A stretch of 60,549 nucleotides of DNA, the filler included, from Hydrolagus affinis (Eukaryota), in NCBI GenBank assembly GCA_012026655.1. It is 5 parts of 5 records of this genome, joined end to end, with 100 filler letters (N's around TTAATTAATTAA, not from the genome) between each part and the next. Parts side by side here need not be neighbours in the genome. Positions count along the whole stretch, not along the records: positions 47,972 to 60,549 come from JAAILG010021729.1; 4 more parts are not named here. One strand, written 5' to 3'. The notes under the pieces were generated by a model, which searched no databases, was not told the origin of the DNA, and saw only the letters and a program-made list of their open reading frames with translations. Of this stretch, positions 11,436 through 60,549 are shown piece after piece. Positions within the stretch are counted from its first letter, which is position 1. Each line of letters starts with the position of its first letter. Position numbers and translations under genes: made by a program.

Positions 11436-12000
11436 CCGCCCTTCCATTATTTTGCTCCCACCCATCCGTCCTCAGCTCGGGTGTGAAGCAGTAACTGCCC
11501 AGCGAACGCGAATGTCCGCCTGACGTGAAGGGCGCTGTACAAATGCAATTTTGTTGCTGCGGTTGTTCGTTACACATCTCCTTTACTGCGGGATAGTTGG
11601 CTGTTCCATTTTGGAAGAAGGTTGAAACAACTTTAAGAGCTGTAGGTGATGATTTGCAGGGGTGTGCGCATTCTTCCAAAATACTACTGCAATTCTTGCT
11701 TGTTACACTGTTGACTATTGGTCCAAAGATAGAAACAATGGAAAGAAACATGGTGTTTGGAAACTGAATGAAATAAATAGCATCTCGACCTGCAGCGCCC
11801 AACTCGTTCACTAATTGCTGTCTGCATTTATTGTAACATATAATGATGCGAGAGTTTAGCTGACAAGCTGATCGGAGAGGAATGTGGTTTCCTCTGAGTC
11901 TGGCTGCTGAAGTGTCTGCTCCCGCAGGGCCTCAATGCCTGACCAAGATTCCGCACAAGTTTCAAACAGACGGATCGTCTCCTATGATTAATATGAAGAC

Positions 12001-51300: not shown

Positions 51301-52280
51301 TTGACAGACACAGGCTCTGCTACATAGAGAAAGGCCCAGACCATTTTTATCATCTGGTATTCTGACGCAGTGTCCACCCACAGTCTTAACGTCACCATTT
51401 TAAATTTGTGCGCAGTGTGAGGTTAGTCATTTTTAAAAAAAATTGCAGTATATTTGTGCAATTCTCTTATCAACATGAGTCAAAAACACCCAGGAATTGA
51501 CAATTGTAAGTCTTGTAGTTTTTAAAAATAATAATTTCTGCTGTCTGTAGAACGTTGGTATAGGAATGCTGGCATTATTACAGCTCGTGGCAATTTTTTA
51601 AAAAAAAACAAAGCATTTAAAAAAAAACTACCTCTCTGTATCCAAAGCCTCTGTCTGTTGCTGTCCTGCGCTGGCAGGTACAGACAGGCTCTCACAGATG
51701 GAGAAAGGCTTTTCCCCCCATTTTCTGAAATTGCTGGATGTTTTTTGGTCAGGTGGGTGACTTAACACATGTAAAAAACCATCACCATGCTTAAGAGCAT
51801 TTAAACCAAACAGATTTCAATGCATCCCACCTACATGTGGTAATTGCGGAGATATGATTGTTGGAATGGAATGCTCACTCTCCCTGGAGGGACACCTGGT
51901 TACCTAACTAGGGCAACTGCTGGAGTCCGACCATATAATGCCACCCCATTACGTAACCCAACATCTTTAAGAGAGTTGGTGAATGAAATACAATGGAGGA
52001 CAACGTTAAAACAAGTATTGGGACTTTATTTCTGCACTTCCATTGAACTTTAAACATGATCAAAGGGCAAGATTACTTACAGACGTTTTATGCTCAGACA
52101 AATGTTTTAAATTGAAAATAAATATAGTACTTTAGTGGTGGACCATCTCCCTGCGACCATCTCCCTGTGACCAACTCCTCCACCTCGGTCAGTATATTTA
52201 TGGAAAGTTTCAGCAGTTAATGTTTGTGGTTTCGGTGACGCCTTGCCTTGTCACATGCCTGTCAAGATGTGGTTGGTGAA

Positions 52281-52568
52281 ATCTTGTAGCTCAGTGGTTA
52301 CAGCACTCTCCTCGCAAGCGAGAGGCCTGGGTTTAATTCCTGTCAGGGTGAAACTTTAGGCAAGTTTCCTTACTCCACACCCCTGATAATAATCCCTCAA
52401 AAAAAATTGGTTATTTCAATCCACAACTCTTTCTGGGAAACTGTTGTGTGCAATTCACTGCTGCGTTTTGCCCACAAATATACAGTCAATTCACTTTACA
52501 TTTTGTGATATGCTTTGAGACACGTAGAAGGCGTGAAAAGCGCTATATCAAATGCAAGGATTATTATG
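52281..52568 (+). mobile_element. tRNA/Deu-type SINE
   Basis: GTAGCTCAGTGGTTACAGCAC head, body, ATT tail. Confidence 0.82.
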
Positions 52569-54040: not shown

Positions 54041-54300
54041 TTTCAAATAGTGTCATGAGATTTTTAACATCCACCTGAACATGCAGACTGACTCTCGGAT
54101 TTACTTATCTGAAGGATAGCACCTTTACCAATGCGGTACACCCCCGACAATGCATTAGAGTGAAATGCACAACCTTCTGATTCACAAGTGATTACTGCCA
54201 ATTGAGTCAGACTCACAACTCAGTGAATGCAATTTTGTCATAATTGTTTACAACTTCATCTATTAAATGGCAAGATTTTCTCTTTGGGTACATTATTCAG

Positions 54301-54632
54301 AGGCCTGCAGCTTAGTGGTTAGAGCACTCACCTCGCAAGCGACAGGACCTGGGTTTGATTCCTGGGCAGGGAGAAACATTTGATAAGTTTCCACAGGACT
54401 CTATGAGTAGCAGTAAGTAGACATCCAGTTGTTAGTTGATTGGCTGGAAGCTTTCCCTTTTTTGAAGGGTAATAATCCCTTCAAAATAATACTACTTCTA
54501 ATAATAATTTGGTCACTCAATCATGAATGCAGGTGGGACACTGCTATGTGTAATTGGCTGCTGCCTTCTTTCCACAGGCTATACAGTACAGTACAGTCAA
54601 TTCACTTTCAGAATTATTATTTATTATTATAA
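54301..54632 (+). mobile_element. tRNA/Deu-type SINE
   Basis: GCTTAGTGGTTAGAGCAC head, body, ATT tail. Confidence 0.78.
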
Positions 54633-55292: not shown

Positions 55293-55700
55293 AACAACAA
55301 CAATAACAACAAAATTACACTTGTTTAGTCCCTTTCACATCAGGAGGACATCCTAAGGCACTGGGCAGTCACTGTGTCAAATCCGAGCTGGGGATAGGAG
55401 GGGGTTGGGGGGTGGTGGGGGGAGAAGTGGGGGATTAGAAGTTGCCAATGGGATCATCGAAGAGGAGAGTCTTGAGGCGGGACTTGAAGGAGGCCAGGGA
55501 GGGGGGCAAGGTGGAGGGACTGCGGGATGGAGTTCCAGAGGTTGGGGGCAGACTGGCTAAAAGCTTCACGCCAACGGTGGGGCGGATGGGTCAGGGGATG
55601 TGGAGCAGGCCAGAGCCTACTGAGCGGAGTGGGTGGACAGGTTGGTAAGGGGGTTAGAAGGTCACGGATGTAGGGTGGGGCGAGGTTGTGGAGGACTTTA
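55293..55700 (-). mobile_element. L2 LINE 3' fragment
   Basis: AAC tail; GGAGTTCCAGAGG (LWNS reversed). Confidence 0.75.
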
Positions 55701-56324
55701 AAAGATAGACACCATTCATTTCTAAAGATTACAAAAATAAGTCTAGAGTCCTGTGAACTATGCTAACAGATAGTGCGATACATCTGGTTTCTGGCACACA
55801 GCTATCTTTCCATCTCACAAAATGGCCAACTTTAAGGTCATCAGGAGGCCACTGATGCCACTTCCTGTACGCTGCATCCACCTAAATTGGCGGAGAGGAT
55901 AATGGTTAACTTCATGGCATCTTTCCAGATACGTGCATTGATTGAGCCAAATAGACAGCAGGATAACCTGCAGTGAAGTGTAGTGACTGAGTGCTTGTTA
56001 GCAAACAAATACATAACTTACTTTATGATGGTTTGAAGCACCTTGCCATGTGTAAAACTTTTAAGACTTTTCAATTCTACGGTATTACATCCAATGCAGG
56101 AATTAGTCTATAATTATTATTTATCCACTAAACATCATCCAATATAACAAATCATCTTCATTCCTTATTATTATCGTGATATTATCAAAGATGAAATTGC
56201 ATTTAAGGCAAAATCACTACTTTAAAATGTTGATGGTGGGTGGACCATGGGGTGGGGATGGGGGAGGGGCGGATGGTGGGGGGCAGGGGGGATGGGGAGA
56301 AGGACAAATCAATGAAGGTCTTAC

Positions 56325-56430
56325 CTTCAAATAGTGTTGGTTTTATGCTAGTCCACAATGATAACTGTCAACAACAGCATCAACAATAAACACAGTGTTA
56401 ACATAGCCCTCTGTATCCCCTGATCAGCGG
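56325..56430 (-). pseudogene. TM exon of the VJ-C1 gene, with premature stop
   Basis: Acceptor TTTTGCAG, donor AG|GTAAGA; phase-1 reading ADQGIQRAMLTLCLLLMLLLTVIIVD*. Confidence 0.72.
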
Positions 56431-56666
56431 CTGCAAAATAAATACAACAATATATAACAAATATAGTATTTGCCAACAAATAAAACATCCTTCTATTGGA
56501 GGACTGATAATGGCACAGCGCACATGGCGTTCAATAGCTCAGGAACTTGATATGATGGTTAATTCTGTTCAGTTAATATTGGGGGCAAGGTGGAGGTGGG
56601 GGAGTGCATAAAAACAATGAAAACACGTCATCAGCAACAAGATTTAGAAGAAAAAAACAAGTTTTC

Positions 56667-56977
56667 CTTGGTAAGAACCAGAAACAACGTAAATAGCAAT
56701 GATTAGAGTCCCAAGGCTCAGGTGAGATACCAGACAGGTGTAAACAGTCCCTCTGTGGATAGGCTTTGTCTCTTCCAAGGAGCTTGAAGCTTTATATCTC
56801 TCCCACCTCTCCCAAGCTGTTTGATTGTATTCACAGCCAAAATGTTCTTATCATCTTTATACCAAGTGATAGTGATATCTTCTGGGTAAAACTCATCCGT
56901 TTCACAAACTAGAGTCAGAGAGGTGGTTGAGTTCCTGTCCGACACTTTGTAGAGTATTTTGGGATGTATCAGGATAG
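56667..56977 (-). pseudogene. C1-set exon of the VJ-C1 gene, frameshifted
   Basis: Acceptor TATGCAG; ILIHPKIL..LTLVCETDEFYPEDITITWYKD, then one base short near 56800, then YKASSSLEE..TVYTCLVSHLSL. The 3' boundary is uncertain (56667 or 56679). Confidence 0.82.
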
Positions 56978-59020
56978 CTGCATAACAAGAGGAGGAATTG
57001 GTGACAGAGAATAAATTTAAAACTTTGTAATTAAAATGTACTTTATTAATTTCTGCTGTAACCATTCCCTCGCCCCTATCCTCCTTGGGGGAAGGGGATG
57101 TAACTGGGGGTTTTCTTGGAGCTCAGCTAACTCCAAGTTGACATGTTTGGCAGCGGAATTCAGAATCGAGGAAGCCCCTGTGATGGTGTCACTAGTTTGG
57201 TTCCTGAACCAGGCAGATCCTCAGTGTTCCAGAGCACCGCTAATAAAGGCACAGCCAACCTTGTTCATCAGCAAGACTTGGGAGATCAGACCTATCATTG
57301 GGTGCATTGGGTCCTGTTAACCCTGCAAGGCAAAGTCCTCATGGGTAGGTTGGTCCTCGCTGGACAAGCAGTGGGAAGATTGCCAGACAGAGATATCAGT
57401 GGCAAGCCATAAATGTTATCTGGTTAAACTCCAGAAGGTAGCCCAATGCATTGGGTGAGGTTCCCAAGTCTTGGCTCTTGCCAACCAGCGCCTAATACTT
57501 TCCAGAATTAGATAAGCAGGATGCATCTCTCTACAGATGTGTATTCCATTCCAAGAATCTAGACATGAGAGCACTGTATCAAAAATGTAAGGATTATTTT
57601 TATTCATCTATCTCTGTAATTTTCATGTGTGGGTGAGATACATGGAAATCAGTTTGTGTGGGTTCTCTCTATCATGGTGATGGGTTTCCGCATGTGCCAG
57701 ACACCATGCTTAAGAACATCCAACACAGGCAGCAAAGACACACCCCAATTAACTATTTCTGGAATTTAGGCGCAAATCGGCAAGAGCCAAGAATTGAGCA
57801 TCCAACAGTGTATGTTCAGGTAACTGCTAGAGTCTAACCAGCTAAAACCTTATAGCTTGCCATTAATCACACTGTCTGACTCCCGTTGCTAGGACCACCT
57901 TTGGTTTACAGGGTTAACAGAAGCTGAGTGGAAGGATTCCTTCCTCCCAGTGACTGGTTTGTTTTTCTAAGACTTGCCGATGACTTTAGACTGGCTGTGC
58001 TATCATCAACACGGCCCAGGAATCCTCGGACCTGCCCAGTTCTGGTCCGACATTCAATTCCCAAACATCTCACATTTGAACCAGTTTCAGTTCTAAGGAA
58101 TCCTCATTAACCCTTCTCTCAGGATACTTTTCAGGGGCGTGTAGTTGGCCTGGATTTAGATCTACTACACTAATGTAGCATTATTAAACATCCAGAATGC
58201 AGCAAATTCTTTAATGCAGCTTTGATTTTGAAGCCCCCGTTTTGTATACATTATTTTAAGAGCTACAGATAACAGCTTCAAAGTTTAGACTGAATTCAAC
58301 AATTTGCCAAGTTGGGGGTCATTGAAATGCTACATAAATTGTGTCAATCTGTTGTTCCCCAGGTGGGATTTCTCACTGGTCATTCATGGAATTGAGAGAC
58401 ACGGCCTACTGAGGAATTGTAAATGAGGCCAGGCTTCAGAGACATTGGCAGTTCAGTCTGAAGTATCTTCAGCTCCGAGAGAAACTCAATTATATTTAAC
58501 TTTAACAGTAGCTCCAGCGACACAACTTCAGGTAAAGTCAGAACAGCTTCTTATGTTTCTACATGTTTATTGGGCTGATCTTTCTTTAAATTCCACTATT
58601 CCGCTATTTGTCTTATGTGAGCGAACATGGGTCATATGTAACGTCTCACCATCCAAATAAAACCAAGAATAAGGATTAAAATAGCAACACGTCTCAGAGC
58701 TGATGTAATATATATTCATGTTACATTACTAATCTTGATGATAATGAATGTGCAATGTCAGTTCATCTCAATTGTTTGCACTGTGAATTCTAGGCAGAAG
58801 GTCGTGGGTTGAAGGTTGTGGGTTCACTGAGCAATATCTAATGAGGTAAGAGTCGCCTCATGGTCATTATTACAACGCGTTTCAGATGCGATCAGGCACT
58901 ATTTAAAAAAACAAGAGTGATGTTAGTTCCTCTCTTTTTTCTGAAGCAAAAAACCCAAATACCGGTATCTGCAATCTAAATATATACACAGCAGGACAAT
59001 GGCAGCGGCCACTTACTTAC

Positions 59021-59336
59021 CGTGGACAACCAGTAAACTTCCAGTTCCATTTGTCATTCCTCTTTCCCAACATCTCACTCTACAGTAATAGGCTCCTGAG
59101 TCCTGGAGACTGATGTTCAGCAGCTGAAGGGAAGCTTCCCCACTCTGGGTAAGGAACCGTTTTCTGCCGTCTGAGCCCGGCTGGAGATACCCATTCTCAC
59201 CCAGTTTCCACCACTCAACAGTCACAGCGGAATTATCAGAAGGGGAGAAAATGCACCTGAAGGTAACATTGGCAGCTACGATGGTGGGGGGGGGTGGGGG
59301 GGGGTTGGGTCACTTTGAGGGGAACACCGGCAGCCA
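59021..59336 (-). pseudogene. Single-exon VJ-type Ig V domain (NKp30-like) with no RSS; frameshift in a poly-G tract
   Basis: Acceptor CTGACAG; AAGVPLKVTQPP..NVTFRCIF..VEWWK..LQDSGAYYCRVRCWERGMTNGTGSLLVVH; donor G|GTAAGT. The exon is 316 nt; removing one G from the G9-T-G9 run (59286-59304) restores the frame. Confidence 0.82.
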
Positions 59337-60284
59337 CTGTCAGAGAGAATATAAACATCCATTACTATATAGAAGCGAAAAATCTACATATAATACAATT
59401 CAAGCATTGAATCAACGCCACCCACGTTGCTAAATTACTCATTTTATTCAGCCAATTTCCAGCACTTTCCCGGTGTCACGAATATATATAAAAATAAAAC
59501 AAGAGATAGAAAGAGCTAAATACCTGACGCCCACTACCATAAAATATTGAAATACAATTCTTACTAACATGTTGAGAATAGGCATTGACACCGCGCTTCC
59601 AACAGTACCAAGTTATGAGAGTATTAGAAAATCTAGTTGTATGTGATTTGGTATAAACAGTGGAGCGGTGATATCGGATACCACACCCTAAAGGGGGGGA
59701 GGGGAGGGGGGGGGCAGAAACGGGTTAGATGATCAGGTAACATTATAGTGTGTAAGTGTCACTTTGTGGGTTAGAATTTCATCTCATCGGCGACTAACAC
59801 CCAGTCCAGCCAATGGGACCATGATCACACCCGGTGTAGCGGTAATTGAGGTGTACATATCACAACAGATTAGAAGCGCGGTGCTCTGGGCTGCGTGATC
59901 TGTGTGTGATCAAATTTACTGATTGCCAAAACATCTCTGCGACGAATTCCAGTTCATCAGCGAGATTCCTGTTGAGTGAAGAGGTTCGCCCATCATTTCA
60001 TTGTTGGCACTGTCAGAAGTGATGTGAAAATGTGCAATACAGAGGTCTACCCGAGCACAGGTGGGGAACTGGGAACTGATGCAACCGCCAAGACTGTATT
60101 TGTTGATTTATTTTCCGGCCAAACTCTTTTTAAAAAAGATGAAAAGTGTTGTACGGTCACAGAGAGCGTTTTTATTTGAGATCTAGAATCTGACAATTGT
60201 CCGCGAAAGTGCAATCTCAACATCCGATTGGAATCCAATGATTCCTGTAAACAATCCAACCAGTACCTGGTGCCAATGTTACGT

Positions 60285-60549
60285 GGAGCTCCTGTGGCTC
60301 AGTGGTTAGAGCACTTGTCTTGCAAGCTGGGGAGACCAAGCTGGGGAGACCTGTGGTTCGAATCCAGGCAGGTCAGGACGAAACCTTGGGCAAGTTTCCT
60401 TACTCCACACGCCTAATAATAATCCCTCCAAAAACAACCACAATAATAAAATTGGTCATTTCAATCCACGACTGTTTGTGGGACACTGCTGTGCGCAATT
60501 GGCTGCCGCGATTCGCCCACAAATATATACAGTCAATTCACTTTACAGC
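60285..60549 (+). mobile_element. tRNA/Deu-type SINE, young copy truncated by the window end
   Basis: GGAGCTCCTGTGGCTCAGTGGTTAGAGCAC A-box region, GGTTCGAATCC B box, GTGGGACACTGCTGTGCGCAATTGGCTGCCGCG central domain. Confidence 0.9.

Follow-up and report, generated by a model that had tools for sequence, protein, structure and literature searches.

A probably non-functional holocephalan member of a chondrichthyan family of non-rearranging VJ-C1 receptors

Antibodies and T-cell receptors arose when the RAG transposon split a gene, whose closest living models are non-rearranging VJ-C1 genes, in which a variable (V) domain and its joining-type (J) strand share one exon and are followed by a C1-set constant domain. 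One of them, PRARP (described in 2019), reportedly combines a non-rearranging VJ, a C1 domain, a transmembrane (TM) segment and a tail. Two others are known from PMC12227049, which describes UrIg as linked to the major histocompatibility complex (MHC), secreted and endowed with three C domains, gives UrIg2 9-11 C domains, and reports both genes from elasmobranchs only. The locus considered here occupies positions 56325-59336 of the window, a 60,549-nucleotide stretch of five joined pieces from assembly GCA_012026655.1 (Hydrolagus affinis), and lies in the 12.6-kb piece from record JAAILG010021729.1. A sequence-only reading had proposed that it is a decayed VJ-C1-TM gene. It is probably a copy that no longer functions (pseudogene or null allele), one holocephalan representative of a multigene family of non-rearranging VJ-C1 cell-surface receptors spread across the Chondrichthyes. 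The novelty first attached to it was overstated, for the family is already present in public annotations from about 20 species, and the window copy is an ordinary damaged member.

Exon anatomy of the locus

The proposed span proves exact, in that both ends coincide with exon ends on the minus strand. The features are as follows (a slash marks an exon boundary).

59524..59585, minus strand: candidate leader exon (split leader), with ATG at 59585, reading MPILNMLVRIVFQYFMVVGV; donor CAG/GTATTT
59021..59336, minus strand: V exon with germline-joined J-like G strand; acceptor acag/TG, phase-1 donor G/GTAAGT, no recombination signal sequence
59286..59304, minus strand: C9AC9 run (G9TG9 on the plus strand), site of the V frameshift (+1 nucleotide)
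59022..59051, minus strand: J-like G strand NGTGSLLVVH with the GxG bulge motif; family consensus NGTGSxLxV
56978..59020, minus strand: V-C1 intron, swollen by high-copy interspersed repeats
56679..56977, minus strand: C1-set exon, 299 nucleotides, with the weak donor G/GTTCTT at its end
56665..56666, minus strand: site homologous to the Callorhinchus C1-exon donor; GT absent in the window copy
56325..56430, minus strand: TM exon; strong acceptor ttttgcag/CC, donor-like end AG/GTAAGA
56348..56350, minus strand: TAG stop directly behind the membrane helix

The V exon begins in phase 1 with a signal-peptide tail (VAAG) and translates as (V)AAGVPLKVTQ...TIVAANVTFRC...WWKLGE...DSGAYYCRVRCWERGMTNGTGSLLVVH; beyond TIVAANVTFRC it continues as ...VEWWKLGENGYLQPGSDGRKRFLTQSGEASLQLLNISLQDSGAYYCRVRCWERGMTNGTGSLLVVH up to the donor. 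The piece is recognized by Pfam (V-set, 9e-8; Ig_3, 4e-8), and the Cys-Cys span of the domain is short, at 57 residues. Because NGTGSLLVVH stands before the donor, the GxG G strand lies inside the V exon (...YYCRVRCWERGMTNGTGSLLVVH, then G/GTAAGT), and V and J form a single exon. No recombination signal was found in a heptamer-spacer-nonamer search within and beyond the V exon, where the best nonamer has at least five mismatches. The germline-joined VJ exon, with its donor and without a recombination signal, is therefore borne out.

The C1 exon encodes TLVCETDEFYPEDITITWYK in one frame (Pfam C1-set, 9e-7) and YKASSSLEE...VYTCLVSHLSL in another frame (C1-set, 0.036); both C1 motifs, FYP..I...W and YTC.V.H, are present. 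A Pfam scan of the V and C1 pieces matched only immunoglobulin (Ig)-type families and detected no tapasin N-terminal domain. The TM exon lies about 250 nucleotides beyond the C1 exon on the same strand and encodes ADQGIQRAMLTLCLLLMLLLTVIIVD, then TAG. Written as ADQGIQ-R-AMLTLCLLLMLLLTVIIVD, it matches the family's short-tail helix class, R-[FL]-[IV]-L...II(V)(D/E)H, and the read QRAMLTLCLLLMLLLTVIIVD, followed by the stop and H, fits this same Arg-helix class. The phases of the V, C1 and TM exons are mutually consistent (1-1-1), in keeping with the proposed order of one C1-set exon and then a TM exon. The leader exon lies 187 nucleotides upstream of the V exon, as in the plan of white shark and Callorhinchus relatives (P0020 and P0224, respectively; split leader, phase-1 intron of about 85-130 nucleotides), but is 1 nucleotide out of phase.

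Elsewhere in the 12.6-kb piece, no additional exon for a V domain, a C1 domain, a TM segment or an immunoreceptor tyrosine-based inhibitory motif (ITIM) was found, nor any other gene. At 51726-51785 (minus strand) there is a faint C1-like signal, dismissed as a chance match inside repeat sequence.

The chondrichthyan family and its nearest named receptors

Searched exhaustively with HMMER, the V piece returned multi-domain Ig proteins, through their summed scores, and single-domain matches with 40-55% identity in proteins of 220-420 residues. These single-domain matches and those of three word-indexed searches share one plan, leader-VJ-C1-TM, and one set of motifs: WWK.GE, NGTGS.L.V, VPPTPL, FYP....TWYK, and YTC.VSH. 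The family comprises more than 100 proteins, and its members (230-400 residues) have the leader directly ahead of V and a single C1. The window copy retains EWWKLGE and NGTGSLLVV; its V-C1 junction is degenerate (HAILIHPK versus the (V/A)PPTP type). All source-named relatives are chondrichthyan, from Callorhinchus, Heptranchias, Pristiophorus, Heterodontus, Chiloscyllium, Rhincodon, Stegostoma, Carcharodon, Cetorhinus, Scyliorhinus, Mustelus, Mobula, Hemitrygon, Hypanus, Pristis, and Narcine. Outside Chondrichthyes, the word-indexed searches matched only two carnivore B7H6 proteins (E 1e-16 and 1e-11). The NCBI names of the relatives contradict one another: SIRP-alpha-like, SIRP-beta-like, Ig lambda-1-like, tapasin-related-like, NCR3 ligand 1-like (NCR3LG1-like), CD276 homolog, and MHC class II beta-like. 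Those of the SIRP-like and tapasin-related-like kind are no more than automatic names.

Tails fall into two types. Tyrosine motifs resembling ITIMs or immunoreceptor tyrosine-based switch motifs (ITSMs) occur in 69 of the 122 retrieved proteins, and a short tail after the R-[FL]-[IV]-L...II(V)(D/E)H helix in 7. Other variants were noted. Five proteins (P0107, P0144, P0069, P0176, and P0177) lack the C1 domain and so have the V-TM-tail architecture of NKp30; this form arises partly by exon skipping, P0069 being an isoform of P0074. In three models (P0206 from Scyliorhinus torazame, 413 residues; P0138, 382; and P0151, 514), two V domains or C1-V-C1 are chained from neighbouring family members; either annotation has fused tandem genes, or these are true multi-domain variants.

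Repair of the reading frame followed by homology searches, the check proposed with the sequence-only reading, places the window copy firmly within this family. The read-through (V and C1 joined, with X at each frame break) is 72% identical to Callorhinchus milii P0224 over 204 residues (E 4e-99). In nucleotides, identity to the exons of the P0224 locus is 85% for V and 82% for C1. These values are beyond chance. Together with matches of up to 94% between short interspersed elements (SINEs) at the two loci, they also make the window most likely holocephalan, in agreement with the cartilaginous-fish origin first proposed.

P0224 itself is an intact XP model, named tapasin-related protein-like, on scaffold MU249845.1 at 15.2 Mb. 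The window copy has the same arrangement of exons (a candidate leader, VJ, C1) and, apart from the leader, the same phases; the J-like strand (MTNGTGS.LVVH) and C1 signature are likewise common to both. Its elasmobranch orthogroup consists of P0205, P0207, P0018, P0212, P0217, P0210, and P0211, whose members have a GC..G-type helix and ITIM-like tails; the window TM exon, in contrast, is of the short-tail Arg type, and the window copy has frame defects besides. The homologous V-C1 intron in Callorhinchus is about 1 kb; that of the window is twice as long because of high-copy interspersed repeats.

The P0224 model (231 residues) reads through the C1 donor CAAG/GTACGA into the intron, ending ...GTIVLFL and a stop (L003, the P0224 locus, 11780-11804). 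A TM exon of the GC..G type lies 2 kb downstream (L003, 13838-13945), so P0224 as it stands is probably either incomplete or a secreted isoform. A comparable short read-through frame follows C1 in the window: ...SGSYQGKLVFFF and a stop.

An IQ-TREE analysis of 82 V-plus-C1 rows, drawn without SIRP, Ig light chain, T-cell receptor (TCR), NKp30 or PRARP references, makes the window sister to P0224 (support 100/99), within a 24-row clade (99/99). The nine-species shark orthogroup in this clade tracks the species tree, and the holocephalan pair stands beside it (84/82). Terminal branches measure 0.17 for the window and 0.15 for P0224; a window branch essentially no longer than that of its intact sister fits recent decay. 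A first tree, which put the window beside carcharhiniform genes, was superseded once P0224 was found.

Structural comparison spreads the family's likeness over many receptors. The AlphaFold model of white shark P0020 has a mean predicted local distance difference test score (pLDDT) of 87.5. With V and C1 together, its best Foldseek matches are Ig lambda and kappa light chains (24-28% identity, E 1e-17), followed by butyrophilins, B7H6, PD-L1, CD276, TCR-beta, and SIRP-alpha. A family profile run against the PDB finds UrIg2 (9dmx, 1e-35) and SIRP-alpha (2wng, 9e-33, V and C1 in a single alignment), with Fab chains scoring similarly. For the V domain alone (pLDDT 90), TCR-alpha V, CD79b, NKp30, CD8-beta, Ig kappa V, and PD-1 receive near-equal scores, and an ESM Atlas look-up returns generic V-set neighbours only. 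(Rankings of V-only and C1-only profiles against the PDB are uninformative: whole-chain scores sum many Ig domains, and titin, contactin and Ig heavy chains dominate.) Identities to Ig light chains, B7H6, SIRP-alpha, and NKp30 are alike, at about 20-29%. Given these near-equal distances, the family belongs to the VJ-C1 structural class, and none of the compared families can be named as its parent. The class placement first proposed thus stands in its general form; a specific kinship with NKp30 or PRARP is no more than a possibility.

The chromosomal setting is available for one relative. P0020, a short-tail member, is encoded at Carcharodon carcharias CM029971.1:103.767 Mb (locus L001, 103.757-103.783 Mb). 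In the gene table supplied by Verissimo et al. (PMC10751288), NC_054485.1 has NELFE at 103.58-103.61 Mb and ATF6B at 104.27 Mb. The LOC genes that separate the two bear no label, and one ends at 103,767,175. Five NCR3-labelled genes are placed at 101.9-102.3 Mb, next to AIF1. Accession offsets, and a gene boundary common to both, suggest that the GenBank and RefSeq records represent the same chromosome. If they do correspond, the P0020 lineage is probably in MHC class III, with the NCR3 cluster some 1.5 Mb away. In white shark, linkage of the family to MHC class III is probable; the family's descent and gene neighbourhoods would bear on proto-MHC models of antigen-receptor origin.

This neighbourhood is one reason to ask whether the Flajnik laboratory has already described this family, as shark NCR3 (NKp30), which would make the window gene simply an NCR3-family pseudogene. 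The proposal is possible, if on balance doubtful. The V domain is of the VJ type, and NKp30 takes ranks 4, 6 and 10 among the Swiss-Prot matches of the V-only model (template-modelling score 0.72-0.74); membrane-helix Arg and short tail are likewise as in NKp30; and eight divergent nurse-shark NCR3 genes (MT914154-61) are cited in PMC12227049. Those NKp30 matches, however, have 20-21% identity, no better than TCR-alpha V, CD79b, CD8-beta or Ig kappa V. NCBI calls none of about 90 named relatives NCR3, though it does so name sawfish genes beside DDAH2; the authors of the table in PMC10751288 left the P0020 interval unlabelled; and mammalian NKp30 has no C1 domain.

A bolder interpretation, offered here only tentatively and itself rather doubtful, is that the family is a pre-RAG-type lineage of antigen-receptor relatives that has gone undescribed as such, distinct from UrIg/UrIg2 and from NCR3, with the window as a decayed holocephalan member. 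Features that may speak for it are the Chondrichthyes-wide non-rearranging VJ-C1-TM plan; the paired ITIM and charged-helix forms; an ectodomain no nearer to any other family than to Ig light chains; and at least one lineage in white shark MHC class III.

It is unlikely that the family falls instead within a SIRP or B7H6/tapasin-related family known from tetrapods, and is no antigen-receptor-like relic. The automatic NCBI names point that way, as do the single V-plus-C1 alignment to 2wng, a pairing of ITIM and charged-helix relatives that resembles SIRP-alpha/SIRP-beta, and the carnivore B7H6 proteins (23-29% identity) that are the only matches outside Chondrichthyes. Yet the family has one C1 where SIRP has two; in B7H6 the G strand reads AVGQVKLEVV, without the GxG that the family keeps, and B7H6 is separated from the family in a tree by a branch of 1.24 substitutions per site; the Pfam matches are confined to Ig domains; and Ig light chains score at least equally well.

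Damage to the window copy and its intact counterparts

The C1 exon measures 299 nucleotides versus the 300 required. One nucleotide is lost at 56795/56796, outside any homopolymer, and the frame shifts between ...KQLGRGGRD and YKASSSLEE. A contig of run X1 (record 2) has the same loss, yet differs from the window at 56961, 56970, 56971, and 57451; the loss is therefore a real allele, seen on a second haplotype. In run X2 (record 17, 56300-56980), an additional A after 56795 restores ...KQLGRGGRDYKASSFLEE...VYTCLVSHLSL, with the length of P0224.

The V frameshift is present in the window sequence, inside C9AC9 (59304-59286), and could be an artefact: contigs of other runs break or pile up at the G9TG9 run. 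X2 (record 24) has one base fewer (-1 at 59299) and eight substitutions across C9AC9, where it reads as ordinary coding sequence (TPQTTVA). The V exon there encodes VTQTPQTTVAIVAAN, equal in length to VTQTLESPIAIVAAN of P0224.

Two further defects were missed by the sequence-only reading. The leader ends in phase 2 and the V exon needs phase 1, owing to one extra nucleotide (GGC GTC AG/GT versus GGC ACA G/GT in Callorhinchus); there is no ATG in the compensating leader frame. At the Callorhinchus-type C1 donor, CAAG/GTACGA is replaced by CAAG/GAAAAC (GT to GA), with a weak in-phase GT 12 nucleotides upstream; among the differences listed for X2, none falls at this site.

The TAG follows directly on the helix, whereas short-tail relatives extend 6-20 codons beyond. 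Here too the listed differences show no change in X2. Because the stop is common to this otherwise open copy, it may be natural or tolerated, not a lesion. Of the three lesions originally claimed, then, the C1 frameshift holds, the V frameshift is real in the sequence but sits in a homopolymer, and the TM stop is shared with an open copy. Decay of this copy is nonetheless upheld.

Intact relatives, whose existence had been anticipated, were found in X2, in Callorhinchus (P0224), and among the more than 100 family members. The X2 copy is 95-97% identical to the window, with V and C1 both open. Since it comes from another individual, the inactivation is recent or polymorphic. Outside the C run, window and X2 copies differ by 11 nonsynonymous and 3 synonymous codon changes, about a neutral ratio, with no sign of purifying selection. 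Another X2 contig (record 23) is identical to the window across the V exon's 3' end, and X2 thus holds either two alleles or two paralogues.

Might the gene be intact and functional in the living animal, the frame defects being errors of assembly or polishing such as a poly-G artefact at G9TG9? The homopolymer setting of the V lesion, the window branch length, which is not raised, and the open V and C1 exons of X2 would all be as expected. Three independent frame defects and the donor change would, however, all need to be errors, and the C1 loss is outside a homopolymer and recurs in an X1 contig that differs elsewhere; the proposal is accordingly quite improbable. It is just as improbable that the three exons are not one gene and that the TM exon is fortuitous or comes from another, lost gene: the window's clade otherwise has the other helix type and ITIM tails, the donor closing C1 is weak, and the Callorhinchus TM exon downstream of P0224 is of the other type, but the window TM exon follows C1 closely on the same strand in matching phase, has a strong acceptor and a family-specific helix pattern, and lies without listed change on the same X2 contig as C1 (record 17).

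Intact members of the family are type I membrane proteins with a membrane-distal V domain, carrying the same-exon J-like G strand (NGTGSxLxV), and one membrane-proximal C1-set domain. Ligand binding is presumed. An inhibitory type would act through a long tail with ITIM/ITSM-like tyrosine motifs. An activating type, with Arg near the outer end of the helix and a very short tail, would presumably, like SIRP-beta and NKp30, depend for signalling on an adaptor that has an acidic residue in the membrane. The window copy appears to join the ectodomain of a conserved, otherwise ITIM-bearing lineage to the short-tail helix type, a pairing that suggests the activating partner in a paired-receptor family. 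With its C1 and V frameshifts and the leader/V phase mismatch, this haplotype would be untranslatable.

Several points weigh against this account. No cytoplasmic exon was found in the 8 kb searched downstream of the TM exon, and the splice from C1 to TM would use the weak donor G/GTTCTT. The V frameshift sits in a G/C homopolymer, a setting that neither assemblies nor short-read contigs resolve reliably, and no run verified it cleanly. The X2 copy is incompletely known, three of its differences being unlisted. A single run is labelled RNA (X12, from another organism); its match is confined to part of the V exon, and the joining of the exons is drawn from genomic sequence. Finally, adaptor-coupled activation is an argument by analogy.

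The X12 match is a 288-nucleotide contig, 95% identical to 59117-59282 and flanked by about 61 unmatched nucleotides on each side; it hints at transcription of a related V gene in a relative.

Repeats surround the gene. A tRNA-derived SINE occurs in three copies (52276-52567, 54300-54608, and 60283-60548), direct repeats with 84-89% identity, two of which contain Rfam tRNA matches (52280-52351 and 54304-54371). The same SINE is found many times in Callorhinchus locus L003, at up to 94% identity. The repeats within the V-C1 intron (57236-57963 and 58276-58379) reach a summed contig depth of 28,000 in X12 and 5,700 in X1, and contain numerous rearranged joints. On the plus strand, G-rich low-complexity tracts of the GGGGxGGGG type (55405-55650 and 56236-56300), just downstream of the TM exon, resemble in character the G9TG9 run that disrupts the V exon.

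By itself a single broken copy adds little. It points to a large family kept in chimaeras, sharks and rays, and provides a small example of birth-and-death turnover, or of null-allele polymorphism, in a paired-receptor family.

Comparison with described systems

Ig light chains resemble this family in their V plus C1-set ectodomain, J-type G strand, and split leader. The family differs in that V and J are germline-joined in one exon, without recombination signals or rearrangement, and in that the protein is anchored in the membrane and has either a signalling tail of its own or a charged helix; V also has a short Cys-Cys span.

UrIg and UrIg2 share the non-rearranging single-exon VJ, the C1-type domains behind it, and the split leader. 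Their VJ is followed by at least three C1-type domains, versus a single C1 and a TM segment here, and the present family occurs in chimaeras as well.

NKp30/NCR3 too has a V domain of germline VJ type, and a short tail behind a membrane helix with Arg; it lies in MHC class III next to AIF1/LST1, a region in which the white shark relative is probably found as well. The window, however, has a C1 exon after V, a domain that the mammalian protein does without.

SIRP combines a V domain bearing a J-like strand with C1-set domains (two, as against one here), and shows the same paired design: inhibitory forms with ITIMs, and activating forms with a basic helix residue and short tail. The 2wng match has about 22% identity, and scores much as Fab chains and UrIg2 do. 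Tapasin and TAPBPL are set apart by a large N-terminal tapasin domain, where the window copy matches Ig-type Pfam families only and the relatives have V immediately behind the leader.

B7H6 (NCR3LG1) shares the order V, C1-like domain and TM segment, a VVASP-type domain junction, and the motifs FYP..ITITW and Y.C.V.H. It departs from the family in its longer V domain and in a G strand without GxG.

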